Positions 49,941-64,000 of a stretch of 64,000 nucleotides of DNA are shown here, one piece after another (positions within the stretch are counted from its first letter, which is position 1; each line of letters begins with the position of its first letter). The position numbers and the translations under genes are program-made. The notes beneath the pieces are model-generated. The model was not told the origin of the DNA and ran no database searches. It was given only the letters and a program-made list of their open reading frames with translations. The stretch lies in the IMG/VR virus record IMGVR_UViG_3300044641_009805, positions 214,436-278,435 of that record; one strand, written 5' to 3'.

Positions 49941-50138
49941 ATGGAACTCGGTGACCTCGCCTGGGATTACACCGATGCGTACGAAAACGTAAGCGGTGCT
50001 TCTTCGCTTCTTAACAGGAGCATGGTGATAATTTTGTCTTATCCAAAACCTCCTACGACCTGTAAGTCCGCCAGGGTTCTTACGTTTGAAGGCGTAGTGA
50101 AGAATGTCCCTATTGAATTTCTTTTACCTTTGTGGTGA
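49941..50138 (+). CDS. xGDLV-family small protein
   Basis: MELGDLAW...ARVLTFEG. Confidence 0.65.
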   Translation: MELGDLAWDYTDAYENVSGASSLLNRSMVIILSYPKPPTTCKSARVLTFEGVVKNVPIEFLLPLW

Positions 50139-50146
50139 GATGATTT

Positions 50147-50494
50147 ATGACGCCCCGTAAAAAATGTTCCAACGTGGTTCCAAACACCTTCATAATTTGT
50201 GGAGAAAATGGAAATTATTGTTCTGAAGAGTGTTATAATGAACGACAGAAAAAAATCGATAAAAAAAAATCTAAGTTCAGGTCTGGAGACTTGGCTATCA
50301 TCGCGTATGATCTAGTTCCATATTGGTCTTCTGATACAGGTATAGGACATCCTACCGGTTACTTTTCTTTTGGTGACATAGTGACGACAGTTTTTCTTTC
50401 AAGAAAGTCGGGAGCTAATTATTGGTACGTCACCTCCGCGATTGGCAATGGGTTCGTTTACGAAATAAACATGCTGCACGTTCATGAAATTTGA
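50147..50494 (+). CDS. xGDLV-family protein with N-terminal Cys cluster
   Basis: C..ICGENGNYCSEEC then FRSGDLAII...IGNGF. Confidence 0.65.
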   Translation: MTPRKKCSNVVPNTFIICGENGNYCSEECYNERQKKIDKKKSKFRSGDLAIIAYDLVPYWSSDTGIGHPTGYFSFGDIVTTVFLSRKSGANYWYVTSAIGNGFVYEINMLHVHEI

Positions 50495-50751
50495 ATTGTC
50501 GTCGTGTTATAAATGATCGTGTGACACTATCTAAACGAAATCAAGAAATTGTTCGTCAGGCAGCGAGAGAAGCAGGAGACCACTTAAAAGGTCGTCTTCC
50601 TCCGTGCAAGTTCTTGAAGCAGCGTAATTCTTACGCTCATATTTGGGAAAGGTTAAAGGCGAGGCTTGGCAGATCTTACAAAGATTGCGATGACCTAGAG
50701 CTTGACAAGATTCTTTCCTTGATCGAATACTATCGAAACAACCCTTGTTGA
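50491..50751 (+). CDS. Hypothetical basic protein
   Basis: TTG start overlapping previous stop. Confidence 0.65.
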   Translation: MNCRRVINDRVTLSKRNQEIVRQAAREAGDHLKGRLPPCKFLKQRNSYAHIWERLKARLGRSYKDCDDLELDKILSLIEYYRNNPC

Positions 50752-50761
50752 AGAATAAACC

Positions 50762-51472
50762 ATGGACGCTTTGATCTCAAGAATCGAGAAAACTTTTTCT
50801 AACAAAAAAATTCGACCGACTGAAGAATTGTTGGCTTACGCAAAAGCCTGCGATGAATTTGCCATGCATAAATTAACGGATGATGAGCTTCAATCGGCGC
50901 TATGCGAATACTTGGATATGTCTGCGTTGCGTATCCGCGCATTGTCAGAAGTTCTTGATAGAGCAAAAGAACCTGCGTTGTCAGAGATTGTGACGGAATC
51001 AATCAACATGCTCGTGGATTCTTTCATTAGAAAAATGGGCCTTTGTGAAGAAGGGTTTTCTGTCTCTTCTGAAAAAAATGTAAGGCTTTCTTCAGGAATC
51101 TATCGAAAACCAGATGTCGGCATTTGGAAAAATGACAAACTGAAGTTGATTATCGAATGCAAGACCTCTCTAGGACGTCGAAGAAAAGAATGGCAGGACG
51201 ACTTTGAAAAAAGAGTTGTTGAGTTCTCTTCTGTCGGCTTGCCTGCAACTTCTGTCATGCTATTCGTGGGTACTGACACGACGTGGAAAGGATTTCCTTC
51301 TGGTGATAAAAGAATCAATGAAACGTGGTTCTCTCTTTGTCCTGTTGGCACCTGGTATGGAGGAGGAAAAGCAGGTGAGACCACCATGTCTTCTAAACAA
51401 CATTCAAACGTCGTAAAAAAGTTTAAAACTGCAATTTTTTCTTCCATCGTTGAAAAAAGTGAATTTATGTGA
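50762..51472 (+). CDS. PD-(D/E)xK nuclease-like protein
   Basis: RKPDVGIW...IIECKTSLG. Confidence 0.75.
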   Translation: MDALISRIEKTFSNKKIRPTEELLAYAKACDEFAMHKLTDDELQSALCEYLDMSALRIRALSEVLDRAKEPALSEIVTESINMLVDSFIRKMGLCEEGFSVSSEKNVRLSSGIYRKPDVGIWKNDKLKLIIECKTSLGRRRKEWQDDFEKRVVEFSSVGLPATSVMLFVGTDTTWKGFPSGDKRINETWFSLCPVGTWYGGGKAGETTMSSKQHSNVVKKFKTAIFSSIVEKSEFM

Positions 51473-51491
51473 ATAAATTCTATTTGCTAAA

Positions 51492-51692
51492 ATGAAAAAG
51501 CTCAATCAAGTTCTCGTCGAAAGAGATGAATTAAAAGCAAAGTTGAATAACTTAGTAAATCTGTTAAAAGAAGCGACTGAATCCGTGAATGTAGCTATCA
51601 ACGTGGAGTTAGAATATGCAGACTATGATTCAGTCGAAAAATTGAAGGTTTTGAAAAAAAAGATAGAGCTAGAGGTAAAAAATTGCGAGTAG
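51492..51692 (+). CDS. Hypothetical coiled-coil protein
   Basis: 66 aa ORF. Confidence 0.6.
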   Translation: MKKLNQVLVERDELKAKLNNLVNLLKEATESVNVAINVELEYADYDSVEKLKVLKKKIELEVKNCE

Positions 51693-51913
51693 CCACACCA
51701 GTTCCTTTTATTTTCATCGTAGACAAAGATGGAAATGCAGTCGATATTTTTGCTGCAGATTCAAAACTCGATTACATTCATGATATAGTAAGGATCCTTA
51801 ACAAAAATCAAACTGAAGACGCTCCTCATGTTCCTTGGTTGTATAATGGATCTACCATGGCGCCACTGATCTCTTCAGCACCTCTTACAATCATTAACGA
51901 AACGTTACATTAA
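51683..51913 (+). CDS. Hypothetical protein
   Basis: 76 aa ORF, TTG start. Confidence 0.5.
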   Translation: MRVATPVPFIFIVDKDGNAVDIFAADSKLDYIHDIVRILNKNQTEDAPHVPWLYNGSTMAPLISSAPLTIINETLH

Positions 51914-51968
51914 ATTTAAATAGAAAACAAATTCATGTGATTTATTCAGAGGCAAATAATTAAATTAT

Positions 51969-52217
51969 GTGAATCATGATCCGATTGATATCGGAGATAT
52001 AGTCGTATTCAAAAGCGACAATCCTGCTTTTAAAATGGGATATGTTTTATGGGCAGGTCCAGATTATGAAGAAACTTCGCTAGAAGTGAAATCTATCATG
52101 CGCCCAGGCGATATTATGTTAGTGTTGTACTTCAGCAAAGAACGTAATAACGTTTTTTTAATGTTACATGATGGGACCACCGGATGGTCAAAAACTACAG
52201 TATTAGAAAAGCTTTGA
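51969..52217 (+). CDS. xGDLV-family small protein
   Basis: IDIGDIVVF...HDGTTGW. Confidence 0.7.
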   Translation: MNHDPIDIGDIVVFKSDNPAFKMGYVLWAGPDYEETSLEVKSIMRPGDIMLVLYFSKERNNVFLMLHDGTTGWSKTTVLEKL

Positions 52218-52236: not shown

Positions 52237-52476
52237 ATGAAACCTGGAGATCTTGTGATGATAGATCCAATGTGGTTTGGATATGATAATATCCTACCGC
52301 AATGGACAGATTCATTGTTCATCATAATAGACGTTTTCAAAGAAAAAAAGAGAATAGCTGATTACAAGCGAATGATCTGCAAAGTTCTCACACCAGAATG
52401 CACGCTTTGCGAATTTTACGATTATGAATTAGTGCTTGCAGAGACAGAAAATTATAGAAAAAACGTGTTATTATAA
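52237..52476 (+). CDS. xGDLV-family small protein
   Basis: MKPGDLVMI...CKVLTPE. Confidence 0.75.
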   Translation: MKPGDLVMIDPMWFGYDNILPQWTDSLFIIIDVFKEKKRIADYKRMICKVLTPECTLCEFYDYELVLAETENYRKNVLL

Positions 52477-52479: not shown

Positions 52480-52890
52480 ATGAATCGAACACTGATCGTC
52501 ATGACGATTTTGGCTTTCGGATTTTCTGCTTTTTTTAGGAAGCTAGCTGTTGATAAATTGCATCCTTATTACATGCAGATCATTTCAGCAGGCGTTTATC
52601 TTACTATGGCTCCCGTATGGTACAATTTGGCTCCTAAAAATGCGACTATGGATGCTCAGGGAACTTTTTATGCAATAATCACTACATGCGTGCACGTCTG
52701 TGGCGCTGTCATGTTCGGAATGTTACTAAAATCTTCTAATTCAACAGGATCTCTATCGGTCATGGTGTCAGCGGCTCCCATAGTCACTGTCTTGTTGTCT
52801 ATCATCTTCCTTGAAGAAGAATTCCAACTGAAACATTTCGTTGCGACCTTGTTAACCTTGTCTGGTTTGACGCTTTTTAATATGAAGTAA
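52480..52890 (+). CDS. DMT/EamA-like small membrane transporter domain
   Basis: Five hydrophobic helices; SAAPIVTVLLSIIFLEE...LTLSG pattern. Confidence 0.78.
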   Translation: MNRTLIVMTILAFGFSAFFRKLAVDKLHPYYMQIISAGVYLTMAPVWYNLAPKNATMDAQGTFYAIITTCVHVCGAVMFGMLLKSSNSTGSLSVMVSAAPIVTVLLSIIFLEEEFQLKHFVATLLTLSGLTLFNMK

Positions 52891-52946: not shown

Positions 52947-53195
52947 ATGAAGTTCCTCGATGCCTACATTGCAGACATTCCTATGGGTTCCTTGATGTAC
53001 CCAAGTGCGGATGCGCGTAACAATTGCAAGGGTGGAAACTACTACCTCGAGGATCTCATGCGGTTTGTTGGCGATTCAGAGATCTTTCCTGCTGTCGTCA
53101 TCCCAGGAAAGTATGAGACTTTCGTCCAGGTTCTCACACCGACCGGCATCCACACCATGAGCAAATTCTCCATGGTTTCTTACGAGAAAACATGA
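52947..53195 (+). CDS. xGDLV-family-like small protein
   Basis: PMGSLMY...VQVLTPTG. Confidence 0.7.
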   Translation: MKFLDAYIADIPMGSLMYPSADARNNCKGGNYYLEDLMRFVGDSEIFPAVVIPGKYETFVQVLTPTGIHTMSKFSMVSYEKT

Positions 53196-53404
53196 AGGTT
53201 CAAGTTGGAGATCTCGTCACCTACGAATGGGCGACCAACCTTTCATTTCATGGGCTGGTTCTCGGTGTCAAGGATTCGTCTGATTTACACGGCAAACATT
53301 CGATCCTATATTCTTTCGAACTGCTAGAAGAAAACGAAAAAAGATTTTGGTACGATGTATGGGAAGGAGTAGACGAGGGCAAGATCATAGTCCATAATCG
53401 ATAG
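53192..53404 (+). CDS. xGDLV-family small protein
   Basis: MKVQVGDLVTY; ATGA coupling. Confidence 0.75.
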   Translation: MKVQVGDLVTYEWATNLSFHGLVLGVKDSSDLHGKHSILYSFELLEENEKRFWYDVWEGVDEGKIIVHNR

Positions 53405-53408: not shown

Positions 53409-53603
53409 ATGAATTCTTTTGCGGTAGGTGATCTGGTCACACTCAACATCCACTCATCATGGATCAAGGGTGACTTGTGCCCTATTTTACTCGTCATAGG
53501 ATTCGGTAAGACTGTCAAACTCAGAAAGCCCACTTGCAAGTTGCTCTTACCAGACGGAACGGTAAAGACGTATTTTAGTCGCCACGTGAAAAAATTACTA
53601 TGA
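53409..53603 (+). CDS. xGDLV-family small protein
   Basis: FAVGDLVTL...CKLLLPDG. Confidence 0.75.
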   Translation: MNSFAVGDLVTLNIHSSWIKGDLCPILLVIGFGKTVKLRKPTCKLLLPDGTVKTYFSRHVKKLL

Positions 53604-53788
53604 AACCAGGTGATTTGGTCATAGGTCGTCAGGAGGGTAGAAAAGGAAAACCTCTCACTGGAATACTCCTATACGAATCTCCCCGAACCAACTGGTGGGG
53701 TGACCAACAACACCGATGGTGGTTCGTCCTGTGTCAGGATGGAATGATCGTGGAAGAGACCGAGAACTACATGGACGTCGTCGAATGA
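53600..53788 (+). CDS. xGDLV-family small protein
   Basis: MKPGDLVIG; ATGA coupling. Confidence 0.78.
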   Translation: MKPGDLVIGRQEGRKGKPLTGILLYESPRTNWWGDQQHRWWFVLCQDGMIVEETENYMDVVE

Positions 53789-53979
53789 AGCGATCACCCA
53801 CGACATGGAGGGAACCTCTCCTTCCCGGTGAACTCGTAAAGTTCTCTGATGAACCTCAGGTTTACGTGGTCATTCGAACCTTCTTCTCCGATCGATTCCT
53901 CGACAACATCGTAGAGGTCCTCACACCCGATGGAAAAACACACCAGTTCTACGAGGACTACATGGATCGAGTCAGGTGA
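53785..53979 (+). CDS. xGDLV-family small protein
   Basis: LLPGELVKF...VEVLTPDG; ATGA coupling. Confidence 0.75.
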   Translation: MKRSPTTWREPLLPGELVKFSDEPQVYVVIRTFFSDRFLDNIVEVLTPDGKTHQFYEDYMDRVR

Positions 53980-54065: not shown

Positions 54066-54869
54066 ATGGCCATTAAATTAACAGGATCCGGTGGGTCCAT
54101 CAAATTAACAGGTACAGGTGGAAGTCTAAAGGTTATTCCGTCAGTCGGCGGTGGAGGGACAATAGACCCAGGTTCTTTTCCCGACCTCGTCGCATGGTAT
54201 AAAGCTGGCTCGTTGGCTTTGAGCAATGGTGCAACTGTTACCAACTGGTCCGATGACTCTCCAAATAACAACGACTTGAACAGTTACGAGAGTGCTCCGA
54301 TATACAACTCATCCGACGCCTTATTGAATGGTATGCCTTCAGTGACCTACGATGGCAATGACTCAAATTATCGATCCAATCCCACAGGACTACCAGTTGG
54401 TTCTTCTGCATGCACAGCATACATTGTAGCATATTGGGATGGTGCATCGGGATGTCAGGGATTGTTCGGCTGGGGTGCAAATGCCTATACAGGAAGTAGA
54501 ATTTCTTTCGGGCAGTGCAATGGACTTTTGCAAGCAGAATCACAAGGCATGGGATCGGTCACACGTAGCATCTCAGCTAACACTCCTTTCATTTATTCTT
54601 TTCCGTATGTTGCGGGTGCAAACTATTCGGCATCCACAACATATCTAAACGGAGTTGGTCTCACAGGCGAAATACCAGGGTTCCCAGGGGTTCCAAATAT
54701 AATCAATCCCGTGTCGGAAATTGCGATTGGACGACCGCCTACGGTAGCTGTCGAACGATGGACCGGTGCTGTTGCAGAGGCTCTTATCTTCAACACGACA
54801 CACGATGCTTCTACTCGTCAAAGCATCGAAAATTATCTAGCGAACAAATATGGAATTACGCTAGCATAA
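54066..54869 (+). CDS. LamG/concanavalin-A-like lectin domain protein with Gly-rich N-terminus
   Basis: AWYKA, NWSDDS, GMPSVTYDG, WTGAVAEALIFN, IENYLANKYG; SD AGGAG. Confidence 0.8.
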   Translation: MAIKLTGSGGSIKLTGTGGSLKVIPSVGGGGTIDPGSFPDLVAWYKAGSLALSNGATVTNWSDDSPNNNDLNSYESAPIYNSSDALLNGMPSVTYDGNDSNYRSNPTGLPVGSSACTAYIVAYWDGASGCQGLFGWGANAYTGSRISFGQCNGLLQAESQGMGSVTRSISANTPFIYSFPYVAGANYSASTTYLNGVGLTGEIPGFPGVPNIINPVSEIAIGRPPTVAVERWTGAVAEALIFNTTHDASTRQSIENYLANKYGITLA

Positions 54870-54933: not shown

Positions 54934-54963
54934 GTGAAATCCCCTCACATCCCATGATATACT
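54934..54963 (+). promoter_or_regulatory. GTGNAA-N18-TANNNT promoter, leaderless
   Basis: GTGAAA-N18-TATACT-N6-ATG(54970). Confidence 0.82.
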
Positions 54964-54969
54964 GATCCC

Positions 54970-55221
54970 ATGGACCTCAGGGTTGGCAACATGGTGACCA
55001 CACCAAGCTACGTGGATCTCTGCACCGATCCATCCCTCTATTATTCCTCCACGATCTTCAGCAGGTATCAGCTCGGAATCGTTGTGGAACTCCTGGAGAC
55101 TCCCGACGCCATCGGCCGAGAGCAGATCACCTATGCAAAGGTTCTCTCCTCCACCGGTCACATTGGTTGGTGTGTGGCCCGTTTCCTTATCCCTGCATCC
55201 CAATATCGTCGAGGATCATGA
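54970..55221 (+). CDS. xGDLV-family small protein
   Basis: LRVGNMV...AKVLSSTGHIGW. Confidence 0.78.
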   Translation: MDLRVGNMVTTPSYVDLCTDPSLYYSSTIFSRYQLGIVVELLETPDAIGREQITYAKVLSSTGHIGWCVARFLIPASQYRRGS

Positions 55222-55424
55222 AACCAGGATCTCTCATCGTAGTCCCTCCGCGTTCATACGTGAATTTCTACCCGGATCTTCGCTATGGAAACTCCACACG
55301 AATCACGGAAAACCAAGCCATGTTGGTACTTCCAGGTTATTCCGATGGTGGTTGGGTAAAGGTTCTCCTGGCGGATCAAAGAATCGGTTACATCTGTGCC
55401 ATCGGCATGAAGGAGGTTCAATAG
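55218..55424 (+). CDS. xGDLV-family small protein
   Basis: MKPGSLIVV...VKVLLADQRIGY. Confidence 0.78.
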   Translation: MKPGSLIVVPPRSYVNFYPDLRYGNSTRITENQAMLVLPGYSDGGWVKVLLADQRIGYICAIGMKEVQ

Positions 55425-55624
55425 TGAACCCACCATTCAACCCGGGTTCCATGGTGAAACTCACGAAGTACCGCACCTCACCCTACTACGATCAACCACT
55501 CCTCATCATCGATGTTGAATTCAAGTACACCATGTACTTCTGCCGGTGTCTCGTTCCAACAACAGCCATGGTTCACACCTTCGATTCCAAGGATCTCCAG
55601 GAAATTCACCCATGTATCCAGTAG
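55424..55624 (+). CDS. xGDLV-family small protein
   Basis: GTG overlapping TAG; FNPGSMVKL. Confidence 0.7.
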   Translation: MNPPFNPGSMVKLTKYRTSPYYDQPLLIIDVEFKYTMYFCRCLVPTTAMVHTFDSKDLQEIHPCIQ

Positions 55625-55821
55625 GAACCTTGATCAGGGTTTGTAACACCGGTGGTGCCATACCCTACATCGAAATCTTCAACAATCGAATCGATTCATC
55701 CCTGGTTATTCCCTATGGTTCACTCGGAATCATAACAGAACAACACTCATACCGTTCCCAGGTGGCATTTCCCAACGCCCACGGGTGGATCCCCAACGAA
55801 TTCCTTGAAATCATTCGGTGA
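55612..55821 (+). CDS. xGDLV-family small protein
   Basis: MYPVGTLIRV...AHGW. Confidence 0.75.
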   Translation: MYPVGTLIRVCNTGGAIPYIEIFNNRIDSSLVIPYGSLGIITEQHSYRSQVAFPNAHGWIPNEFLEIIR

Positions 55822-55846
55822 AAACCCACTAAAAATGTATTAGTAT
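55818..55846 (+). promoter_or_regulatory. Variant of the GTGNAA promoter
   Basis: GTGAAA-N17-TAGTAT-N8-ATG(55855). Confidence 0.6.
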
Positions 55847-55854
55847 ACAACACC

Positions 55855-56142
55855 ATGGCCATCTATCGAGTCTCATTCCTCACCGATCTCCTGGTGGAAT
55901 GTGAAAATGAAAAAGAAGCCGAGATGATCGGATTCAAACACCTCACCGATGAGGTTGATAACCGAGGATCCGAGGTTTTCTCAATCAAACTCCTAGAATC
56001 TCCGGATCAGGTTCGCAGGTGGGAAAGAGGTTCCTTACCATGGAGGGATACCCAACGAGATCTCCGCGGTGAACGTGAAAAACCTGTGGAACAAATCCTC
56101 AGAGAGGCACAAAATGGCAATCTACCAAAAACACCAGGTTGA
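55855..56142 (+). CDS. Hypothetical protein, paralog of 59600-59842
   Basis: YRVSF...ERGSLPWR. Confidence 0.78.
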   Translation: MAIYRVSFLTDLLVECENEKEAEMIGFKHLTDEVDNRGSEVFSIKLLESPDQVRRWERGSLPWRDTQRDLRGEREKPVEQILREAQNGNLPKTPG

Positions 56143-56398
56143 AACATGGATACCCCTGGATGAACACCTAAAAAATCCCGTTAATTTCCCTAGAGGAATT
56201 ACCTCAGGATTTTTGGTGGTATTTACTCCACCTCCCCAGGATGAAAGGTTGTACCCACTTCGCCCCGGAAATCCAATACTTTTCCTAGGTGAAATCCCAG
56301 GGATGAAGGGCCATGGGATCTTCGTGGGGAACGATGGATTGGTTCGATTCGGGTATCACACCCATGATTTTCGGGTTATTCCCATGGAGGAACTGTGA
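56114..56398 (+). CDS. Hypothetical protein, paralog of 59839-60117
   Basis: PLDEHLKNPVNFP.GITSGFLV, LFLGEIPGMKGHGIF. Confidence 0.8.
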   Translation: MAIYQKHQVETWIPLDEHLKNPVNFPRGITSGFLVVFTPPPQDERLYPLRPGNPILFLGEIPGMKGHGIFVGNDGLVRFGYHTHDFRVIPMEEL

Positions 56399-56631
56399 AA
56401 ATCGGTGATCTCTTTCGCAGGAATCGATACCAAACAACCGGTGTATCAATCTTCAGGGAAAACTCCACCCTGGACTTCGATTGGATCGCGTTGGTTCTCA
56501 AAATAACTCCACCGTCCTACTCCACAACCCACTACACCACCATCGAGGCCCTCGTTACACCCGATAACCTGGTGATGAGGGCACTCCTCTTGAATGATGA
56601 GATGGAAGAAATTCTCGAGGTTCTCAGGTGA
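56395..56631 (+). CDS. xGDLV-family small protein
   Basis: MKIGDLFRR; GTGA coupling. Confidence 0.75.
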   Translation: MKIGDLFRRNRYQTTGVSIFRENSTLDFDWIALVLKITPPSYSTTHYTTIEALVTPDNLVMRALLLNDEMEEILEVLR

Positions 56632-57236: not shown

Positions 57237-57406
57237 GCCCCGGTGATCTCGTTATTTTCTACGAAGATCCCAACCTTGTTCTCGAGGTACACAAACACCT
57301 CAACATTGTTATCCTCTTCAACCCCAGGCTCCAAACCATGGATCGTTGGGGATACAATTGGATCAGTAAAAACTTCACCGTGGTGAAAAACCCACATTCC
57401 ACATGA
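57233..57406 (+). CDS. xGDLV-family small protein (57 aa, below cutoff)
   Basis: MSPGDLVIF; TTGA coupling. Confidence 0.7.
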   Translation: MSPGDLVIFYEDPNLVLEVHKHLNIVILFNPRLQTMDRWGYNWISKNFTVVKNPHST

Positions 57407-57412
57407 TACCAT
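57383..57412 (+). promoter_or_regulatory. GTGNAA-N18-TANNNT promoter, leaderless
   Basis: GTGAAA-N18-TACCAT-N6-ATG(57419). Confidence 0.8.
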
Positions 57413-57418
57413 ATAACC

Positions 57419-57592
57419 ATGGTTCCTGGTTCCCTTCTCATCTCAATCGAACCTCACCACCATGTTCCACCCGGTATCGCCCTTCTCCTCTCCGAATCCC
57501 CCACCGGAGCATGTGAAATCATGTGGAACAATGGAACCACCTCCATCTACTCCTACTTCTTCCTCAAAAGGAACTTCAAGGTTCTCCAATGA
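57419..57592 (+). CDS. xGDLV-family small protein (57 aa, below cutoff)
   Basis: MVPGSLLI...FKVLQ. Confidence 0.75.
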   Translation: MVPGSLLISIEPHHHVPPGIALLLSESPTGACEIMWNNGTTSIYSYFFLKRNFKVLQ

Positions 57593-57795
57593 AACCCGGT
57601 GATCTGGTTCAAACCAAATACAACATGCACTTCTTCTCCACCGCATCTCGGGTAAACGATCAACTCCCCGATGAACTACTTCACAAAGGAACCACCGGGA
57701 TCATCATCTCTCCTCCCAACGGAACCTGGATCAGGTGGATGGTTAATGGTAGGATTGGTTGGGGAAACTGGAACATGATGGAGGTTCTCCAATGA
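57589..57795 (+). CDS. xGDLV-family small protein
   Basis: MKPGDLVQT...NGRIGW. Confidence 0.8.
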   Translation: MKPGDLVQTKYNMHFFSTASRVNDQLPDELLHKGTTGIIISPPNGTWIRWMVNGRIGWGNWNMMEVLQ

Positions 57796-57980
57796 AACCC
57801 GGTGATCTTCTCTTCATCAAACCTGGTACCCAGGTTCCACCCAACGGCAGGTATTCCCGTGGAATCATTCTGGATTCTCCATCCTCCCACGGTCTCATCA
57901 CCGTTGGGTGGCACGATGGGAAGATCAACAGTGAGATCATCACCAACATCAACCAGTACTACACGGTGATTCCCCAATGA
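57792..57980 (+). CDS. xGDLV-family small protein
   Basis: MKPGDLLFI. Confidence 0.78.
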   Translation: MKPGDLLFIKPGTQVPPNGRYSRGIILDSPSSHGLITVGWHDGKINSEIITNINQYYTVIPQ

Positions 57981-58213
57981 AAAACCTCAACAAAGGTGAT
58001 CTCATAATCATCTGTGCTCCTAGCCACTCCTACCCCAACTCCTGGGTTCGAGGCCAGGATCCACACCGATACTCCGTGGATACTCCGGTGATCTACCTCT
58101 CCGAATTCAAGGAGAAGCACGGAGGTAATAACCCTCGGGTCTTCTTCAACGTTCTCACCCCGGATGGGGAACACAACATCTTCTCCGGGTACTGCAAGGA
58201 GGTTCCACAGTGA
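57977..58213 (+). CDS. xGDLV-family small protein
   Basis: LNKGDLII...FNVLTPDG. Confidence 0.78.
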   Translation: MKNLNKGDLIIICAPSHSYPNSWVRGQDPHRYSVDTPVIYLSEFKEKHGGNNPRVFFNVLTPDGEHNIFSGYCKEVPQ

Positions 58214-58304: not shown

Positions 58305-58493
58305 GTGAAACCCGGTTCACTCGTTGGTTGGAAATCCCGATTCCAAATGGATCTTCCCGGTGATGTTGGGATCATCCTCGAACACATCCCCTATGAATTC
58401 CGTGGAAATGATCCGTTCCCCCACTGGAAGGTATTGTTTCCAGAACGTGGAGTTCTTCACTGCCGAGAATCGGATCTCCAGGAGGTTGAGTGA
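58305..58493 (+). CDS. xGDLV-family small protein
   Basis: MKPGSLVGW...WKVLFPERG. Confidence 0.78.
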   Translation: MKPGSLVGWKSRFQMDLPGDVGIILEHIPYEFRGNDPFPHWKVLFPERGVLHCRESDLQEVE

Positions 58494-58696
58494 GAGTTGG
58501 TGATCTCGTTCTCTACTACAACTCCGATAGGATTCCCCTCCCCCTCCTCGGAATCATTCTCCAAGAAAAGTTCTTGGATCTCCAAGAACTCAACCTCATC
58601 ACGGTGGATCATCGTTTGTTCTCGGTTCTACTGAGCAACGGATCCGAGAAAATCATACCGGATTCCTACCTCAGGCACCTCAACGAAGTGGAGTGA
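58490..58696 (+). CDS. xGDLV-family small protein
   Basis: MRVGDLVLY...SVLLSNG. Confidence 0.78.
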   Translation: MRVGDLVLYYNSDRIPLPLLGIILQEKFLDLQELNLITVDHRLFSVLLSNGSEKIIPDSYLRHLNEVE

Positions 58697-58722
58697 AAAT
58701 CCCCACCTCGATAGGATAGGAT
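58693..58722 (+). promoter_or_regulatory. GTGNAA-N18-TANNNT promoter, leaderless
   Basis: GTGAAA-N18-TAGGAT-N6-ATG(58729). Confidence 0.82.
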
Positions 58723-58728
58723 AACATC

Positions 58729-59229
58729 ATGGCAACGAAGAAATCCTCCAGTTCCACCAAGAAATCCACCGAGAAAAAGAACTTCGTGTTGAAGTTCCAC
58801 ACATCCCTCGATGGAGAGAATAACTCCTGGGATTCACCTATGTTCTACAGTGAATCCGGGCAAGGTTGGGTGGCCGATATCGGAAGTGCAACTCGATATT
58901 CCGAGAGCGGTGCGGATGGGATCATCCTGGAACTTCTCAAGGTGGAAAAGATCGCATCCGAGTTGATCGATGTGAACGAGAAACCGGATAACCTCTTCTC
59001 ACTTCACACGGTGTTCCTCAATGTGAACAACATCCCGCAGATCATCAACAAGGTTCCCCAGTTCATCGGTGATACCTACCACCTCATTCCCTCCCACGAG
59101 AACTGGAGTGAGGAGGATCTGGTGGATATGTTGAAGGAGGATCGTTTCACGGTTCTATGGGATCCGGTTGGAAGTTTTGTTCCTGAGGATAACGAGAGTT
59201 GGTTGAATGGTTTGATGGGTAAATCATGA
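58729..59229 (+). CDS. Hypothetical protein
   Basis: 166 aa ORF behind promoter. Confidence 0.8.
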   Translation: MATKKSSSSTKKSTEKKNFVLKFHTSLDGENNSWDSPMFYSESGQGWVADIGSATRYSESGADGIILELLKVEKIASELIDVNEKPDNLFSLHTVFLNVNNIPQIINKVPQFIGDTYHLIPSHENWSEEDLVDMLKEDRFTVLWDPVGSFVPEDNESWLNGLMGKS

Positions 59230-59408: not shown

Positions 59409-59590
59409 ACCTCCCTCGAATTCGAAGTGGATTTCGTTTGTTGTTGAGAAGTTCCACCGGGTTCTTCACCTCCTTCCCCAACTGGAACCTGATGGGTATC
59501 AGGGCCCGGCAGGTTGGAATATGTTTACGTGCCATTCGAAGTGGATTTTTTGATGAACCTCCGGTGAAAAACCCAACCGGTGGAGGATAG
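59405..59590 (+). CDS. Possible basic hypothetical protein
   Basis: GTGA coupling; IRSGF occurs twice. Confidence 0.45.
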   Translation: MNLPRIRSGFRLLLRSSTGFFTSFPNWNLMGIRARQVGICLRAIRSGFFDEPPVKNPTGGG

Positions 59591-59593
59591 TAT
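59564..59593 (+). promoter_or_regulatory. GTGNAA-N18-TANNNT promoter, leaderless
   Basis: GTGAAA-N18-TAGTAT-N6-ATG(59600). Confidence 0.82.
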
Positions 59594-59599
59594 TGAATC

Positions 59600-59842
59600 A
59601 TGTTGTACCGAGTAACATTTCACACCGAGATCCTTGTGGATTGTGTTGATCCTCACGAGGCCGAGAGTATCGGTTTCCGGAACCTATCCGAGGAGATTCG
59701 AGGTTCATCGGTGTACAAGGTTGAGAAGATCGATTCGGTGGATCAACTTCACCGGGAGGAACGTGGATCCTTACCATGGAGATCCACCGAGAGGCACCTT
59801 GAACCTGAACTTCGGGTAGAGGAAATCCTAGGAGGAAAGTGA
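59600..59842 (+). CDS. Hypothetical protein, paralog of 55855-56142
   Basis: YRVTF...ERGSLPWR. Confidence 0.78.
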   Translation: MLYRVTFHTEILVDCVDPHEAESIGFRNLSEEIRGSSVYKVEKIDSVDQLHREERGSLPWRSTERHLEPELRVEEILGGK

Positions 59843-60117
59843 ACATGACCTACCAACGTGAACAATTTGAAGGTTGGTTACCACTGGATGAACACCTAAA
59901 AAATCCTGTTAATTTCCCGGTTGGAATAACCTCCGGATTTCTTGTGATTTATTCTGCCCCACCTGGAAATGGGATGTGGAAAACAGGAGATCCGGTGTTA
60001 TTCCTTGGAGAAATTCCAGGTATGAAGGGCCATGGGATATTTTCCGGGATGGATGGTGTGGTTCGTTGGGGATCCCATACATTTGATTTTCGGGTGATTC
60101 CGGAGGAGGAACTATAG
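59839..60117 (+). CDS. Hypothetical protein, paralog of 56114-56398
   Basis: PLDEHLKNPVNFPVGITSGFLV, LFLGEIPGMKGHGIF. Confidence 0.8.
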   Translation: MNMTYQREQFEGWLPLDEHLKNPVNFPVGITSGFLVIYSAPPGNGMWKTGDPVLFLGEIPGMKGHGIFSGMDGVVRWGSHTFDFRVIPEEEL

Positions 60118-60119: not shown

Positions 60120-60500
60120 ATGGGTACAAATTATTACCTTAGAAAAGAATCACCTTCCAAATGTGTAACCTGTAAACACGATCCGGAGGAGGAGGTTCTT
60201 CACATCGGAAAATCCTCCTTCGGTTGGTGTTTCTCCCTACACATCATCCCCGAGATGGGTATCAATTCCCTGGAGGATTGGATCACCGAGTGGGGTAAAC
60301 CCAATACCAAAATCCTAAACGAATACGATGAGGAGGTTCTCCCCGAGGATATGATCAAAATCATCACCACTCGAGGCCCAGGGAGGTGGTGCCCGGAGGG
60401 AATGGAACTTCAACGCCATGCTCCATACCACAAGGAAAATCCAGGAACGGTTCGTGAGGGGCCAGGCTCCTATGATTTAATTCTCGGCGATTTTAGCTAG
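60120..60500 (+). CDS. Conserved phage hypothetical protein
   Basis: MGTNYYL...HIGKSSFGWCFSLH. Confidence 0.78.
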   Translation: MGTNYYLRKESPSKCVTCKHDPEEEVLHIGKSSFGWCFSLHIIPEMGINSLEDWITEWGKPNTKILNEYDEEVLPEDMIKIITTRGPGRWCPEGMELQRHAPYHKENPGTVREGPGSYDLILGDFS

Positions 60501-60501: not shown

Positions 60502-61293
60502 TTAAACTTCCTGTTGGAGTTTTTTTAATTTTTTCTTTTCCCACCCTAATCTCTGCTTTTCTTTCATCATTGCCCTGAACTCAGGATCATCCCACCTTTT
60601 CTTTCTGGATTCAATAACCTTGAATCGATATTCAGGATCCTCCCACATCTTCTTGCTAGATTCACTCATCTTTTCTCTGTATTCAGGATCTTCCCATACT
60701 TTCTTCATGGTTTCAGAAATCTTTTCTTGGTATTCAGGATCTTCCTTAAATTTCTTTTGAGTTTCACGCATTTTTTCTTTGAACTCAGGATCCTCCCACA
60801 TCTTTTTTCTAGATTCACTAATTTTGGATTGATATTCAGGATCCTCCCACATCTTTTTACTATTCTCACTCATCTTTTCTCTATGCTCAGGATTCTCCCA
60901 CATTTTCTTACTTATTTCCTGAAGTTTTTTTCTTTCTTCAGGATCTTCACACCTTTTTTTATGTGATTCACTCATCTTTTCTTTATGTACATCCGCATGT
61001 TTGTAACCTGAGCTACCTTCCCCTCCAACGGTAAGATTTGCTCCACCATTTCCATGGTGAACATATGTTTGAAGTTCCTGAATGAGTTGTATCTCTTTAT
61101 CTAGAGATTCCTGTTCGTTATAGGTTTCAAACACAACTTCTCTAATGATCCCATGTTTCTTTTTAATGTTGGTGTGAAGAAGATTTCTTTCTAGATCTTT
61201 AATCCTCTTCGTTATTCCCTTCCCAACATAAAATGGTTTCCCATCATCCTTCCGATAATCAACATACACGAAGAATTTCTTCTCAGTTTCCAT
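60502..61293 (-). CDS. GIY-YIG endonuclease with NUMOD3-like repeat tail
   Basis: FVYVDY..FYVGKG...R..E..N; followed by helical repeats. Confidence 0.85.
   Translation of the reverse strand: METEKKFFVYVDYRKDDGKPFYVGKGITKRIKDLERNLLHTNIKKKHGIIREVVFETYNEQESLDKEIQLIQELQTYVHHGNGGANLTVGGEGSSGYKHADVHKEKMSESHKKRCEDPEERKKLQEISKKMWENPEHREKMSENSKKMWEDPEYQSKISESRKKMWEDPEFKEKMRETQKKFKEDPEYQEKISETMKKVWEDPEYREKMSESSKKMWEDPEYRFKVIESRKKRWDDPEFRAMMKEKQRLGWEKKKLKKLQQEV
60555..60985 (-). repeat. Eight 17 aa (51 bp) tandem repeats; coordinates approximate
   Basis: SExxKKMWEDPEYREKM consensus. Confidence 0.85.
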
Positions 61294-61569: not shown

Positions 61570-61571
61570 CC

Positions 61572-61601
61572 GTGAAATTCCCCACCGCGGGATGATATAC
61601 T
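61572..61601 (+). promoter_or_regulatory. GTGNAA-N18-TANNNT promoter, leaderless
   Basis: GTGAAA-N18-TATACT-N6-ATG(61608). Confidence 0.82.
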
Positions 61602-61607
61602 TGAAAC

Positions 61608-61826
61608 ATGCTTCCCGGTAATCTTGTCAAAAACCTGTGCTTCACCCACCTCTATTCCACGGTGAAACAGGTTCACAGAGGACTTCCGGAGGATGTGATT
61701 CCAATCGATTCTCTACTCACCATTCTCACCCCACCCAACGGAACACTGATCAAGGTACTGTACCGTGGGAAGATTGGATGGGTAAACACTAACTTCCTGG
61801 AGGCAATCTACAATGAAACCCGGTGA
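61608..61826 (+). CDS. xGDLV-family small protein
   Basis: MLPGNLVK...IKVLYRGKIGW. Confidence 0.8.
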   Translation: MLPGNLVKNLCFTHLYSTVKQVHRGLPEDVIPIDSLLTILTPPNGTLIKVLYRGKIGWVNTNFLEAIYNETR

Positions 61827-62007
61827 TTTGATTGAGTTCCGCAAATGGGGTTCCGGAACCTCCATGTGGCACACCTACATCGGAATGGTACTGGAAACTC
61901 CAATCATCTTCAACCACGAACACTGGTGTACCATTCTTCACAACGGTGAGGTTCGAAAGGAAATGGTAACACCCAACTGGTATGTTTTAAGCAATGATCC
62001 CCGGTAA
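61813..62007 (+). CDS. xGDLV-family small protein
   Basis: MKPGDLIEF. Confidence 0.78.
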   Translation: MKPGDLIEFRKWGSGTSMWHTYIGMVLETPIIFNHEHWCTILHNGEVRKEMVTPNWYVLSNDPR

Positions 62008-62212
62008 AATATACCTCTCCGATTCCTGCACCGTTTGGAACTCCCCTTCCACACAATCCCCTGAAATCATGGTGGATCACCTGGAATACAACGAAATAGT
62101 TCTTCTGCTCTCCCTCCACGGAGATGAACTCCAGGTTTTAACACCCCGAGAAAAAATAGGTTGGATTTCCCCCCGATCCGATGGAAAGGCCCGATTACGT
62201 GAGAATCGGTGA
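61994..62212 (+). CDS. xGDLV-family small protein
   Basis: MIPGKIY...LQVLTPREKIGW. Confidence 0.75.
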   Translation: MIPGKIYLSDSCTVWNSPSTQSPEIMVDHLEYNEIVLLLSLHGDELQVLTPREKIGWISPRSDGKARLRENR

Positions 62213-62414
62213 TATTGTAACCAACAATTCCCCAGGAAGTTCCTCCAAGTTATTCTCATCCCCACTCGGATCGGTTCCTCCTGGAACCAGGAAATACCAC
62301 GGGCTTCTAACCGGAATCGGTTTGGTTGTTGATGTTCATCGTTCCGATGTTAAGGTTATCTGTGGTGAAAATATTGGTTGGTGTTATGTAGGAAACGTGA
62401 AGGTGGTGGAATGA
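62199..62414 (+). CDS. xGDLV-family small protein
   Basis: RIGDIVT...VKVICGENIGW. Confidence 0.75.
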   Translation: MRIGDIVTNNSPGSSSKLFSSPLGSVPPGTRKYHGLLTGIGLVVDVHRSDVKVICGENIGWCYVGNVKVVE

Positions 62415-62620
62415 AGGATATTCAACTCGGAGATCTGGTTTTTATCATCGGTTCCCTATACATTCACCCTCAAACCCCGGTAATCATCTCCGATATTTTC
62501 CAACCTCCTTATTCCTCCACACCATGGTACGTGGTTCTCAATCCACTCACCGGTGAGAAACTGGAATATCAGGAACACAACATCTCAACCACACCACCCA
62601 TCGGAACACTTCCCAAATGA
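62411..62620 (+). CDS. xGDLV-family small protein
   Basis: IQLGDLVFI; ATGA coupling. Confidence 0.78.
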   Translation: MKDIQLGDLVFIIGSLYIHPQTPVIISDIFQPPYSSTPWYVVLNPLTGEKLEYQEHNISTTPPIGTLPK

Positions 62621-62841
62621 TCCCCGGTGATCTTCTCCGTGCCCGGAGTAAAATCAGGGTTGGATTGGTTCGGATCTACACCGATGATCAATGTGATTCA
62701 TGGGAAACACACGTGAAAAAGGGTGAAACCTTCGTTCTACTGGATGAACACCAGAACTCATGGAAACAGGATGTTTGTAAGGTTCTATTTCCCCGTGGAG
62801 TTCGTTGGGTTTACCGGCTGGATGTGGAGGTGGTGGAGTGA
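62617..62841 (+). CDS. xGDLV-family small protein
   Basis: MIPGDLLRA...CKVLFPRG. Confidence 0.78.
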   Translation: MIPGDLLRARSKIRVGLVRIYTDDQCDSWETHVKKGETFVLLDEHQNSWKQDVCKVLFPRGVRWVYRLDVEVVE

Positions 62842-63023
62842 GAAACGATGATATCCTCAGTGTGAATCAGGTGGTACCTGGATCCCTGGTTCTTCACCGT
62901 TACAACCCTGAGATCGGTGTGGTTCTCCGCGTTTCCTGGAACATGGTTGAGATTCTACTCGGAAACTCCACCGTGAGGTGGGAGATGAATGGATTCAGGA
63001 ATATCTTTAGGAATCTCCAGTGA
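62838..63023 (+). CDS. xGDLV-family small protein
   Basis: VVPGSLVLH; GTGA coupling. Confidence 0.72.
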   Translation: MRNDDILSVNQVVPGSLVLHRYNPEIGVVLRVSWNMVEILLGNSTVRWEMNGFRNIFRNLQ

Positions 63024-63211
63024 AACGAGGAACCCTGGTTAGATTCAACGTTTACCCCTATTCCTCATGGGGATTGGGGATTCTCCTCGGTGAGAAACCG
63101 TTTGTGGATAGAGAAGGTAGGAATCACCGTGGATTTTATGATGTTTTAACCCAGTGTGGGGTTAAACTCGTTTCCGATGAGTTCTTCGAGAGGTTGAGCT
63201 GGGATGTTTAA
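63020..63211 (+). CDS. xGDLV-family small protein
   Basis: MKRGTLVRF...YDVLTQCG. Confidence 0.78.
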   Translation: MKRGTLVRFNVYPYSSWGLGILLGEKPFVDREGRNHRGFYDVLTQCGVKLVSDEFFERLSWDV

Positions 63212-63410
63212 CACCGGTGATCTGGTTCTAATCACCGCGGATTTTCTGGAACCACATGAACCCCGTGTGGGGATATTCTGGAGCGATAAGGTTCCACTGG
63301 ATGAATGGGGAGATCAGGTTGCAGGTGAGTGTGATTGTATCGTTTTCTGGAACGAAGATTTCATTCCTTTCATATGGGAAAACCTAACACTCCTCTCGGA
63401 GGCACCATGA
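63204..63410 (+). CDS. xGDLV-family small protein
   Basis: MFNTGDLVLI. Confidence 0.78.
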   Translation: MFNTGDLVLITADFLEPHEPRVGIFWSDKVPLDEWGDQVAGECDCIVFWNEDFIPFIWENLTLLSEAP

Positions 63411-63655
63411 AACCCGGTGATTTGGTTGGTGTGAAGGATGGTGATAAAGGTAACACCTACTGGTTATACCATCCTGAATCCCCAATTACCATTAACCTCA
63501 TCCCCACCGATATTCGGTTTGGATTCTCGGATACCGGTTTGATATTGAAAACCCATATGAACAATGGGATGTACCCTTACGCAACCTTCCTCAAGATTCT
63601 CACCCCTCGGGGAATCGGTTGGGCAAATGAGAATTGGGTGGAGGTTCTCAAGTGA
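63407..63655 (+). CDS. xGDLV-family small protein
   Basis: MKPGDLVGV...LKILTPRGIGW. Confidence 0.8.
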   Translation: MKPGDLVGVKDGDKGNTYWLYHPESPITINLIPTDIRFGFSDTGLILKTHMNNGMYPYATFLKILTPRGIGWANENWVEVLK

Positions 63656-63918
63656 AACCCGGATCACAAGTTCGTTTAATTCCTGAGTTAGAAGGTAACG
63701 ATTGTTCTCTTCCCCTATGGGATGATCCACCTGATTTCACTTCAATCTATAGGAAGAACCACACCGGGAGGTTCCGTTACTCCGAGGTGGGAGTGATTCT
63801 TGAACAAAGATACATTCTCAATGATGTTCATGATTCTCTACCCACCAGTTTTTGGGTGAAGGTGTTGTGCCCCGGTGGGATTGGTTGGATAAAGAGATGT
63901 GATCTGGAGTTGGTGTGA
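63652..63918 (+). CDS. xGDLV-family small protein
   Basis: MKPGSQVRL...VKVLCPGGIGW. Confidence 0.78.
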   Translation: MKPGSQVRLIPELEGNDCSLPLWDDPPDFTSIYRKNHTGRFRYSEVGVILEQRYILNDVHDSLPTSFWVKVLCPGGIGWIKRCDLELV

Positions 63919-63944
63919 AAAGTTGAAACCTGGTGTGTTAGGAT
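63915..63944 (+). promoter_or_regulatory. GTGNAA-N18-TANNNT promoter, leaderless
   Basis: GTGAAA-N18-TAGGAT-N7-ATG(63952). Confidence 0.78.
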
Positions 63945-63951
63945 TGAATCT

Positions 63952-64000
63952 ATGAAACCCGGTAATCTGGTTCGAGTTACCAACACCCTAACCCCTCTCT
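63952..64000 (+). CDS. xGDLV-family protein, 3'-truncated by window edge
   Basis: MKPGNLVRV... Confidence 0.7.
   Translation, partial: MKPGNLVRVTNTLTPL

Follow-up and report, generated by a model that had tools for sequence, protein, structure and literature searches.

Sixty candidate genes for small SH3-like proteins in an uncultured lake-water phage

Why would a phage carry, side by side, several dozen tiny genes whose products begin alike and then diverge? The question is raised by the last 64 kb (64,000 nucleotides, hereafter the window) of a 278,435-bp IMG/VR contig of an uncultured lake-water phage. The preliminary description, made from the sequence alone, reported about 35 paralogs sharing an MKPGDLV start and a (K/R)VL..G.IGW end in the window. 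This observation is confirmed, and the array is larger than was reported. Small plus-strand ORFs starting with (M)(K/R/I/V)(P/V/I/R)G(D/S/N/T)L(V/I) are present as described; genome-wide, 29 such motifs directly follow a start codon, of which 28 lie in the array, all on the plus strand, and none on the minus strand. The curated list includes 36 candidates in window positions 49941-64000 and, because the array runs off the contig end and resumes at the contig start (which had been missed), 24 more at genome positions 127-5718, that is, 60 candidates in total, plus about 8 dispersed copies. The ‘IGW’ ending, said to be frequent, occurs in 11 of the 36 window members (16 of 60).

Profile tests support about 50 of the candidates as one family. 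The 16 ‘IGW’ sequences form a core group, and 25 further members show an hhalign probability of at least 80% against the core profile, whereas 150 decoys reach at most 1.7% and the non-family genes in the array score below 1% in all but one case (w60120, 13%; here w and g denote window and genome coordinates). A leave-one-out (LOO) HMM ranks 33 of 59 candidates above all 1776 decoy ORFs. Nine candidates (w49941, w52947, w53192, w56395, w63204, g3380, g3777, g5076, and g5270) share only the N-terminal motif and fail both profile tests. Of the two outliers proposed previously, the gene at 42184-42522 on the minus strand is a true, dispersed member (hhalign 92.8% over 75 columns), whereas the ORF at 46044 has no profile support.

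The left arm of the array, like the rest of it encoded on the plus strand, starts with a motif-level candidate at 49941-50138 (MELGDL start; hhalign 17%, LOO E=0.069), followed by a two-part protein at 50147-50494 that combines a Cys-rich N-terminus with an SH3-like C-terminal domain (residues 42-114; hhalign 83.2% over 73 columns). Family members are found at 51969-52217 (95.4%; LOO E=6e-6) and 52237-52476 (MKPGDLV; 96.4%), weak candidates at 52947-53195 (48%; LOO E=1.1) and 53192-53404 (57% over 16 columns only), and further family members at 53409-53603 (86.8%), 53600-53788 (MKPGDLV; 95.5%, LOO E=8e-9) and 53785-53979 (90.7%). The next run comprises a core ‘IGW’ member at 54970-55221 (phmmer cluster 0; iterated HMM E=3e-17), a core-cluster member at 55218-55424 (by phmmer clustering), an intermediate candidate at 55424-55624 (48.6%; LOO E=2.4e-4) and a core ‘IGW’ member at 55612-55821. 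A two-gene non-family module (95 and 94 aa; hhalign to the family <1%) occupies 55855-56398, and its second copy, at 59600-60117, encodes proteins 54% and 67% identical to those of the first.

Beyond the first copy of this module, a weak candidate at 56395-56631 (33% over 8 columns), a family member at 56628-56867 (89.1%) and an intermediate candidate at 56857-57063 (20%; LOO E=2.6e-4) are followed by three short-type members at 57060-57236 (58 aa), 57233-57406 (TTG start; 95.5%) and 57419-57592 (90.1%), a core ‘IGW’ member at 57589-57795, and family members at 57792-57980 (94.6%), 57977-58213 (82.5% over 73 columns), 58305-58493 (96.0%) and 58490-58696 (92.3%). A homing-endonuclease-like gene with WEDPEY/KMSE repeats (phrog_314, E=7e-16) lies on the minus strand at 60502-61293; three similar genes are present in a relative, L005. 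The last long run includes core ‘IGW’ members at 61608-61826, 61994-62212 and 62199-62414, a core-cluster member at 61813-62007, a weak candidate at 62411-62620 (8.2%; LOO E=1.2e-3), a core member at 62617-62841, an intermediate family member at 62838-63023 (43%; LOO E=7e-6), a family member at 63020-63211 (81.1%), a motif-level candidate at 63204-63410 (9%; LOO E=1.1), and core ‘IGW’ members at 63407-63655 (with 12 metagenomic orthologues at 46-93% identity) and 63652-63918. The member at 63952-64000 (MKPGNLVRVTNTLTPL...) is cut by the contig end; a full-length homologue exists in L005 (1986-2189), and a direct join to the contig start is out of frame.

Do these proteins adopt one fold? Structure prediction had been proposed in advance as the way to find out, with heterogeneous predicted folds counting against a single family. 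AlphaFold2 models were obtained for two proteins, the 68-aa ‘IGW’ member at 57589-57795 (pLDDT 97.8) and the 58-aa short-type member at 57060-57236 (pLDDT 92.1, a five-strand barrel), and both are confident small beta-barrels of the SH3 type, even though the underlying alignments are shallow. In Foldseek searches, the long type matches SH3 at probability 1.0 and SH3b AFDB clusters at TM 0.75-0.87, whereas the short type matches PWWP, SH3 and KOW barrels. A 14-sequence core profile retrieves genuine Pfam SH3_3 repeats of cell-wall hydrolases as well as hundreds of viral proteins of 65-96 aa. Thus, the earlier assignment to KOW/SH3-like barrels is supported, although the family is better named SH3b-like than KOW. 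In the alignment, entropy is low in the strands, whereas high entropy and insertions are found at positions 8-33 and 42-47, that is, in the RT and n-Src loops, the usual binding face of SH3 domains. The predicted pI values are heterogeneous (29 acidic, 19 neutral and 11 basic proteins).

The dN/dS ratio across related phages, another test suggested beforehand, is 0.27-0.44 in seven informative orthologue pairs (0.27 for the gene at 62411-62620 and 0.33 for that at 62617-62841), an eighth pair being identical. The statement that nearly all genes are joined by ATGA, GTGA or TTGA overlaps is exaggerated: of 71 junctions, 50 overlap, 33 of these by 4 nt, 16 by more (8-32 nt) and 1 by 1 nt, whereas 6 are gaps of 0-12 nt and 15 are gaps of more than 12 nt. 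The reported leaderless promoter is real as a motif. The sigma-70-like sequence GTGAAA-N17/18-TAnnAT-N6-ATG, with the -10 box 6 nt before the ATG so that the mRNAs are likely leaderless, occurs 8 times in the window against 0.84 expected (0 of 100 shuffles reach 8) and is present in relatives. Seven of the eight occurrences head gene runs: 54934-54972 (GTGAAA-N18-TATACT-N6-ATG, at the left edge of the compositional zone described below), 55818-55857, 57383-57421, 58693-58731, 59564-59602, 61572-61610 and 63915-63954, all on the plus strand. A phage sigma factor is encoded elsewhere, and no phage RNA polymerase was detected.

A feature absent from the preliminary description is the composition of the DNA itself. 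From window position ~55265 onward, the sequence is nearly free of GAC/GTC (20 found, ~394 expected) and 3-8-fold poor in the dinucleotide GC; GWC-free gaps extend up to 3967 nt, against at most 387 nt elsewhere. The zone continues at genome positions 1 to ~5700, and relatives share it. About 48 of the 60 candidates lie within this stretch of roughly 14.5 kb, as does the homing-endonuclease-like gene. The remaining twelve (11 in the left arm, w49941-w55218, plus g5479) and all dispersed copies lie outside, and several other phages have arrays with normal GAC/GTC density, so the family does not depend on the zone.

The interpretation that we favor, tentatively, is that the array is a massively expanded family of stand-alone, cytoplasmic, single-domain SH3-type barrels (57-115 aa) of a jumbo phage, homologous to the bacterial SH3b/SH3_3 domain. 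The conserved strands (MKPGDLV; G-I/V-V-L-E; K-V-L; G-x-I-G-W; L-E-V-V) hold the barrel while the RT and n-Src/distal loops vary freely in sequence and length, so that each paralog would present a different binding surface. The genes sit in translationally coupled runs, the stop of one overlapping the start of the next, with the Shine-Dalgarno GGAGG in the C-terminal E-V codons of the preceding gene, and each run is launched by one of the sigma-70-type promoters. The zone, purged of the symmetric words GWC and, less strictly, GC, is inferred to be the part of the genome that is exposed first and unprotected in the cell, and the SH3-like proteins would be its payload, a library of small binders made in the first minutes to neutralize or redirect host proteins, defense systems included. 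There is precedent for the requirement that only first-entering DNA lack nuclease sites and for variable anti-defense genes in leading regions (PMC10644984; PMC12455610). The analysis demonstrates the existence of the array, the homology and fold of its products, the location of the variation, purifying selection, the coupling and promoter motifs, and the zone with its conservation in relatives, whereas early timing, first entry and binding to host targets are inferences.

The earlier interpretation is only partly supported. The fold, the hyper-expanded and diversified library (about 50 profile-supported copies) and the operons headed by a leaderless-type promoter stand. Expression immediately on infection is inferred only from the sigma-70-like promoters, the phage sigma factor, the lack of a detectable phage RNA polymerase and the unusual zone; no transcript, protein or interaction data exist, and the only two RNA-labelled runs looked like DNA. 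The suggestion of anti-defense binders or host-machinery decoys is speculation that was not tested here. With regard to first entry, the physical genome ends are not known: the record is ‘linear’, about 84% complete and breaks inside the zone, and in G002, the one complete relative, the zone is internal in the assembled (probably circularized) contig. Furthermore, SH3b domains classically bind peptidoglycan rather than cytoplasmic proteins.

Two alternatives appear unlikely, to about the same degree. The first is that the proteins bind nucleic acids or the translation and transcription machinery in the manner of KOW, Sm or Tudor domains, acting on ribosomes, RNA polymerase or RNA to redirect gene expression rather than on diverse host proteins. 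The short-type model matches PWWP-ssDNA complexes, NusG/Spt5 KOW domains and a ribosomal protein at TM 0.6-0.69, the xGDxV first strand is shared with KOW domains, and 11 of 59 members are basic. However, a Pfam search with 10 members gave no KOW or Sm hit, the long-type profile retrieves SH3_3 and not KOW, most members are acidic or neutral, and one conserved machinery target would not need about 60 diverged binding faces. The second alternative is largely selfish or neutral amplification, with duplication and shuffling driven by recombination between the conserved 5′ ends and by the resident homing endonucleases, and with most copies contributing little to fitness. Gene content indeed turns over quickly between close relatives (G000 and L005 are 95-98% identical where alignable, yet genes are replaced and the continuation differs), homing-endonuclease genes are interspersed (1 here and 3 in L005), dN/dS is fairly high for phage genes, and nine candidates are barely recognizable. 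Against this possibility, all ORFs are intact with preserved coupling signals, dN/dS is below 0.45 in every informative pair, AlphaFold2 confidence is high, and the family persists as arrays in many independent IMG/VR jumbo-phage contigs, across phages of 42-58% G+C.

For the zone alone, a mutational footprint, such as context-specific cytosine deamination, instead of selection against a recognition word is more doubtful still. The enriched words GAT, GTT, GGT, ACC, CAC and GTG are those that C-to-T and G-to-A changes at GC/GWC would leave. However, the G+C content of the zone is not lowered (0.47 against about 0.41 for the rest); the edges are sharp, although the left one is fuzzy over 54970-55265; the depletion is near-absolute and is the same in relatives at about 70% identity with different gene content; and alanine drops to 1.1% of residues in the in-zone members against 3.1% in out-of-zone members (1.5% for all members against 7.0% in the rest of the genome), which implies a sustained constraint. 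The least likely reading, that the proteins bind peptidoglycan or another envelope polymer, for example to modulate lysis, block superinfection or protect the wall, draws on the sequence and fold homology to SH3_3 domains of amidases, glucosaminidases and lysozymes but is opposed by the lack of room for a signal peptide or membrane anchor before the first barrel strand, the lack of a fused catalytic domain, and the location of the genes far from the transcription unit of the lysozyme gene and behind early-type promoters.

Among known systems, the bacterial SH3 domain (SH3b; Pfam SH3_3, PF08239, SH3 clan), exemplified by the cell-wall-binding domains of lysostaphin and phage endolysins, shares the fold, detectable sequence homology and the G-x-(I/V)-G-W-V strand pair with the array proteins; the latter, however, are stand-alone, have no signal peptide or catalytic partner, are found only in viral sequences, and individually do not reach the Pfam threshold (best 12.8 bits against 27). 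The first-step-transfer (pre-early) region of phages T5 and BF23 is similarly a compact block of many small genes of unknown function behind host-type promoters, on DNA that must lack nuclease recognition sites because it is exposed before protection is in place (PMC10644984). The terminal host-takeover module of SPO1 is comparable. In the present case, no terminal repeat or two-step entry has been shown, the avoided words are 2-3 bases long and near-absolute rather than the sites of particular restriction enzymes, and one protein family dominates the payload. The variable leading (first-injected) regions of Autographiviridae, which carry anti-defense genes, show similarly rapid gene turnover, and the absence of motifs there decides sensitivity to restriction (PMC12455610), but that case concerns single Type I sites in phages of about 40 kb, with unrelated early genes instead of one expanded family. 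The multigene families and ‘genomic accordions’ of large eukaryotic DNA viruses (ankyrin, BTB, poxvirus K3L amplification) likewise amplify and diversify one binding scaffold in tandem, thought to serve host antagonism; here the virus is a bacteriophage and the units are whole, translationally coupled single-domain genes. We found no report of a comparable expansion in phages; the array looks like a first-expressed host-takeover module of a kind that we did not find described. Finally, KOW, Tudor and PWWP barrels share the five-stranded SH3-like architecture with an xGDxV first strand and are matched by the short type in Foldseek searches, but there is no sequence-profile match to KOW for the 10 members searched, and the long type carries a full RT loop as in true SH3 domains.

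The contig carrying the array is 278,435 bp long, its last 64 kb being the window, and is classified in IMG/VR as a linear virus record that is about 84% complete. It encodes a DnaE-type polymerase (window 15397-18981), an isocitrate lyase, an unusual auxiliary metabolic gene (window 37212-38456), a lysozyme with a PG_binding_1 domain, a factor of the sigma-70 family (genome 79088-79297), 14 tRNAs, including a cluster of 12 at genome 52-54 kb, and one beta-class adenine methyltransferase of unknown specificity. Neither a C5 cytosine methyltransferase nor a phage RNA polymerase was detected in the record. No cultured phage is close: a megablast search with 8 kb of the sequence and a tblastn search with a family member against 50,697 phage records returned nothing, and the DnaE in the same collection finds only relatives at 30% identity or less. 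In contrast, near-identical sequence occurs in many lake-water metagenomes from 2017 to 2024.

The small ORFs of the preliminary description exist as described there. A start codon followed by the motif (K/R/I/V..)(P/V/I..)G(D/S/N/T)(L/M/I)(V/I/L/A) occurs 29 times in the genome, and 28 of these occurrences lie in the array, all on the + strand. The array does not stop at window position 64000 but resumes at the start of the contig (locus L001) and extends to about 5,718; the curated list includes 60 candidates, 36 in the window and 24 at the contig start. The contig ends (window 63952-64000 and genome 1-127) fall inside the array and cut one member, the ORF that begins at 63952. Simple circular closure of the contig was rejected because the direct join is out of frame and the close relative L005, a related metagenomic contig, continues with different genes, so that some sequence is probably missing between the ends. 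Of the 71 junctions between consecutive + strand genes, 33 are 4-nt NTGA overlaps, 16 are longer overlaps, one is a 1-nt overlap, six are gaps of 0-12 nt and 15 are larger gaps. The C-terminal EVV/EVL often encodes the GGAGGT Shine-Dalgarno sequence of the next gene. The MKPGDLV start is conserved in part at the nucleotide level (ATG AAA CCC GGT GAT CTN): Pro is encoded by CCC in 15 of 26 cases, compared to 13% of the Pro codons in long ORFs genome-wide and 30% elsewhere in the array genes, and Gly is encoded by GGT in 41 of 58 cases, compared to 31% and 39%, respectively. This motif creates a GATC site at most gene starts.

Whether all these ORFs are mutually homologous, as implied by the claim of a single paralogous family, was to be assessed by all-against-all profile comparison, and the result is mixed. 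Pairwise phmmer comparison links only small groups, the largest of which includes 11 members, or 16 once metagenomic relatives are added. Leave-one-out HMMs place 33 of 59 candidates above every one of the 1,776 decoy ORFs from the same genome, and hhalign against the 141-sequence core profile yields a probability of at least 80% over at least 35 columns for 25 candidates beyond the 16 core members, whereas 150 decoys reach at most 1.7%. About nine further candidates are supported by the leave-one-out HMMs only, and nine fail both tests and share only the N-terminal motif, so that the comparison does not settle the matter for the complete set of about 35-60 ORFs. Of the ten non-family genes of the array that were tested, nine score below 1% and one (window 60120-60500) scores 13%. 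About eight copies of the family are dispersed outside the array, with normal GAC/GTC density: genome 18262-18504(+), 32393-32701(+), 38909-39169(+), 49381-50135(-, three in a row), 73950(+) and 76554(+), and window 42184-42522(-). The latter had been singled out in the preliminary description and is supported as a member (92.8%), whereas the other suggested outlier, the ORF at 46044, is not supported.

Structural modeling had likewise been proposed as a test of a common fold. The AlphaFold2 model of a 68-aa member with the IGW ending, built with only 14 aligned paralogs, has a pLDDT of 97.8 and shows the SH3 arrangement of five strands, an RT loop, an n-Src loop and a 3-10 turn before the last strand. 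It matches SH3 domains in the PDB at a Foldseek probability of 1.0 and a TM of about 0.65-0.70, and bacterial SH3b clusters in AFDB at a TM of 0.75-0.87. The model of a 58-aa short member (pLDDT 92.1) is a five-strand barrel that matches PWWP, SH3 and KOW barrels about equally well, with NusG/Spt5 KOW domains aligned at a TM of 0.6-0.68, and so does not discriminate between a KOW-type and an SH3-type barrel; no KOW (PF00467) hit at E≤1 was found among the 10 members scanned. In the same scan of 10 members, neither Pfam nor PHROGs gave a significant hit, and the best SH3_3 (PF08239) match was 12.8 bits (E=0.14), below the gathering threshold of 27; sequence searches of the PDB gave only marginal SH3 hits. 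At the profile level, however, homology to bona fide SH3_3 domains is detected. The core profile (A1), searched against 1.8 billion representatives, yields 637 hits at E≤1e-3. The long hits are amidases, glucosaminidases and lysozymes with 4-12 matched repeats (E down to 9e-30) that Pfam identifies as SH3_3, next to Amidase_3, Glucosaminidase or Phage_lysozyme domains. The short hits are 65-96-aa proteins with the same MKPGDLV...GxIGW...LEVV layout, the clusters of which are labeled in the ESM Atlas as viral and unannotated. The family is therefore SH3b-like at the profile and fold level but represents a distinct, viral, stand-alone branch.

In the 141-sequence alignment, the strands (MKPGDLV, G-I/V-V-L-E, K-V-L, G-x-I-G-W and L-E-V-V) are conserved, whereas positions 8-33 (the RT loop) and 42-47 (the n-Src/distal loop) show near-maximal entropy and contain most of the insertions. 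These loops form the ligand face of SH3 domains. The isoelectric points range from 4.1 to 9.9, with no common charge. The ORFs are single domains that start with strand 1 at residues 1-9, with no fused domain and, in most members, no N-terminal extension, although no dedicated signal-peptide predictor was run; accordingly, neither an extracytoplasmic location nor fusion to a wall-active enzyme is indicated. The 115-aa protein at window 50147-50494 combines a Cys-rich N-terminus (CGENGNYCSEEC, zinc-ribbon-like by eye) with an SH3-like C-terminal domain.

The comparison of substitution rates across related phages, also suggested in advance, yielded dN/dS values of 0.27-0.44 for seven informative orthologue pairs with the relatives L005 and L002, an eighth pair being identical. 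Related contigs from independent metagenomes carry similar arrays with different gene complements, and a scan of IMG/VR for the conserved 5′ nucleotides returned many jumbo-phage contigs with 8-19 family hits per 10 kb. Several genes that do not belong to the family are embedded in or adjacent to the array. A two-gene module of unknown function is duplicated at window 55855-56398 and 59600-60117 (95/94 aa and 80/92 aa; 54% and 67% identical; hhalign to the family <1%). A homing-endonuclease-like gene (phrog_314), with a GIY-YIG-like N-terminus by eye and C-terminal WEDPEY...KMSE repeats, is located at window 60502-61293(-), and three such genes are interspersed in the array of L005 (2834-3817, 6362-7282 and 10289-11005, -); these may drive gene shuffling. 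An EamA-like membrane protein (Pfam E=1.6e-9) is encoded at window 52480-52890, in the left, out-of-zone part of the array, and a 267-aa protein that matches a PHROG family of virion structural proteins (E=2.6e-13) is encoded at window 54066-54869, immediately to the left of the edge of the zone considered next but one.

The gene runs are separated by spacers of about 35 nt that contain the promoter-like pattern GTGAAA-N17/18-TAnnAT-N6-ATG, found eight times in the window against 0.84 expected. Seven of these occurrences head runs between 54934 and 63954 (at 54934, 55818, 57383, 58693, 59564, 61572 and 63915); the pattern is also present at L001:832 and recurs in relatives. GTGAAA overlaps the stop codon of the preceding gene, at the position where the GTGA-overlap start of a member would normally sit. 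The -10 box lies 6 nt before the start codon, which places the expected transcription start at the A of the ATG; that the mRNAs would be leaderless is an inference from sigma-70 geometry. The available read data gave only flat contig depths from Logan, and the runs labeled as RNA are probably DNA, so that they provide no evidence on transcription or on terminal repeats. The case for host-type promoters rests on the sigma-70-type motif, together with the presence of one phage sigma factor and the absence of a detectable phage RNA polymerase.

Codon usage in the array is unusual, with 93% of Asp encoded by GAT and Ala accounting for 1.5% of the residues against 7.0% in the rest of the genome, and the cause lies at the DNA level. 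From genome position ~269,700 (window ~55,265) to the contig end, and from 1 to ~5,700, GAC/GTC occurs 20 times where ~394 are expected, and seven of the 20 lie in the first 300 nt. All GC-containing trimers are depleted 3-8-fold, and alanine and the codons GAC, GTC and GGC are nearly removed from the encoded proteins. GWC-free gaps reach 3,967 nt inside this zone, whereas the longest gap elsewhere in the genome is 387 nt. The same hierarchy, with GAC/GTC far more depleted than AGC/GCT, followed by the other GC words, is observed in the relatives L005 (one site in 11 kb), L002-L004, G001 (0-13 kb) and L037, and in the complete 298-kb genome G002 (56.5-69.5 kb). Several simple causes can be ruled out. 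A codon-level or tRNA-level effect is incompatible with the equal depletion in all three codon phases. The depletion is not a property of the protein family because family members outside the zone have normal density (26.4 GAC/GTC per kb against 1.07 per kb inside), whereas non-family genes and the minus-strand endonuclease gene within the zone are depleted. General avoidance of palindromes or restriction sites does not fit either, given that GATC and CCGG are enriched and 6-mer palindromes without GC/GWC are at expectation (169 against 155). Finally, the G+C content of the zone is not low (0.47). Other phages have arrays of the family with normal GAC/GTC density, and family and zone are therefore separable.

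The avoided words are dyad-symmetric (GWC, GC), the edges of the zone are sharp, and the feature is conserved while gene content turns over, which points to sustained selection against a DNA-level recognition word that acts only on this compartment. The zone is therefore interpreted, tentatively, as a first-exposed, host-transcribed takeover module, with the SH3-like proteins as its diversified payload. The data do not discriminate between a host defence, the phage's own host-DNA-degrading nuclease and restriction that depends on a modification as the source of the avoided activity. The existence of the ORFs, the profile-level homology, the predicted fold, the location of the variable positions and the depletion of the words follow directly from the sequence analysis, whereas entry order, early transcription and binding of host targets are inferred, no expression or interaction data being at hand and neither the host nor the physical genome ends having been identified. 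The interpretation offered in the preliminary description is supported only in part, and the function as anti-defence binders is a hypothesis. A more far-reaching possibility, which we consider less likely than not although compatible with the data, is that the 13-15-kb compartment embodies a new kind of genome defence by word avoidance, namely a first-exposed segment made intrinsically immune to a frequent-cutting, GWC- and GC-directed activity. That activity could be a host defence, or the phage's own host-DNA-destroying nuclease acting while only this segment is in the cell. The constraint is strong enough to nearly remove alanine from the encoded proteins, and in this view the SH3-like array would be the diversified anti-host payload carried on that segment.

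Among the alternatives, binding of the transcription or translation machinery or of RNA and neutral amplification of the array are both considered unlikely, to the same degree. For the zone, a mutational footprint is less likely than selection because G+C is not reduced and the depletion is near-absolute. Envelope binding, in the manner of classical SH3b domains, is the weakest alternative given the stand-alone, single-domain organization of the proteins, although binding to peptidoglycan or other wall polymers was not assayed.

If the preferred interpretation holds, a phage devotes a large share of its genes to a single minimal binding scaffold diversified on its ligand face, a natural binder library that would be a new format of phage counter-measure. 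The family is absent from Pfam and PHROGs yet recurs as arrays in many uncultured lake jumbo phages, so that naming it would annotate hundreds of viral proteins. Literature searches for such arrays or for word-free zones found no precedent. Small, well-folding SH3 scaffolds with natural loop diversity also are candidate reagents for inhibitors of bacterial proteins and defence systems.

With respect to known systems, a diversified library of this kind resembles the multigene families of giant eukaryotic viruses. The nearest precedent for the zone is first-entering DNA. T5-like phages are restricted only when sites lie in the first-step-transfer region (PMC10644984), and the zone shares with that region, as a sequence property only, the lack of recognition words that the rest of the genome contains, as well as small genes behind promoters of the host type, on motif evidence. 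Location in a long direct terminal repeat at the entering end of the virion DNA is neither supported nor excluded, as the contig breaks inside the zone, which lies at contig ends in three assemblies (G000, G001 and G005) but is internal in the complete G002; two-step transfer was not examined. The work on T5 leaves open how first-entering phage DNA survives while host DNA is destroyed (PMC10644984), and the GAC/GTC-free zone, in which apparent DNA-level selection reshapes amino-acid composition over 14 kb, offers a possible, testable answer. In Autographiviridae, similarly, the leading region decides sensitivity to restriction and carries variable anti-defence genes (PMC12455610).
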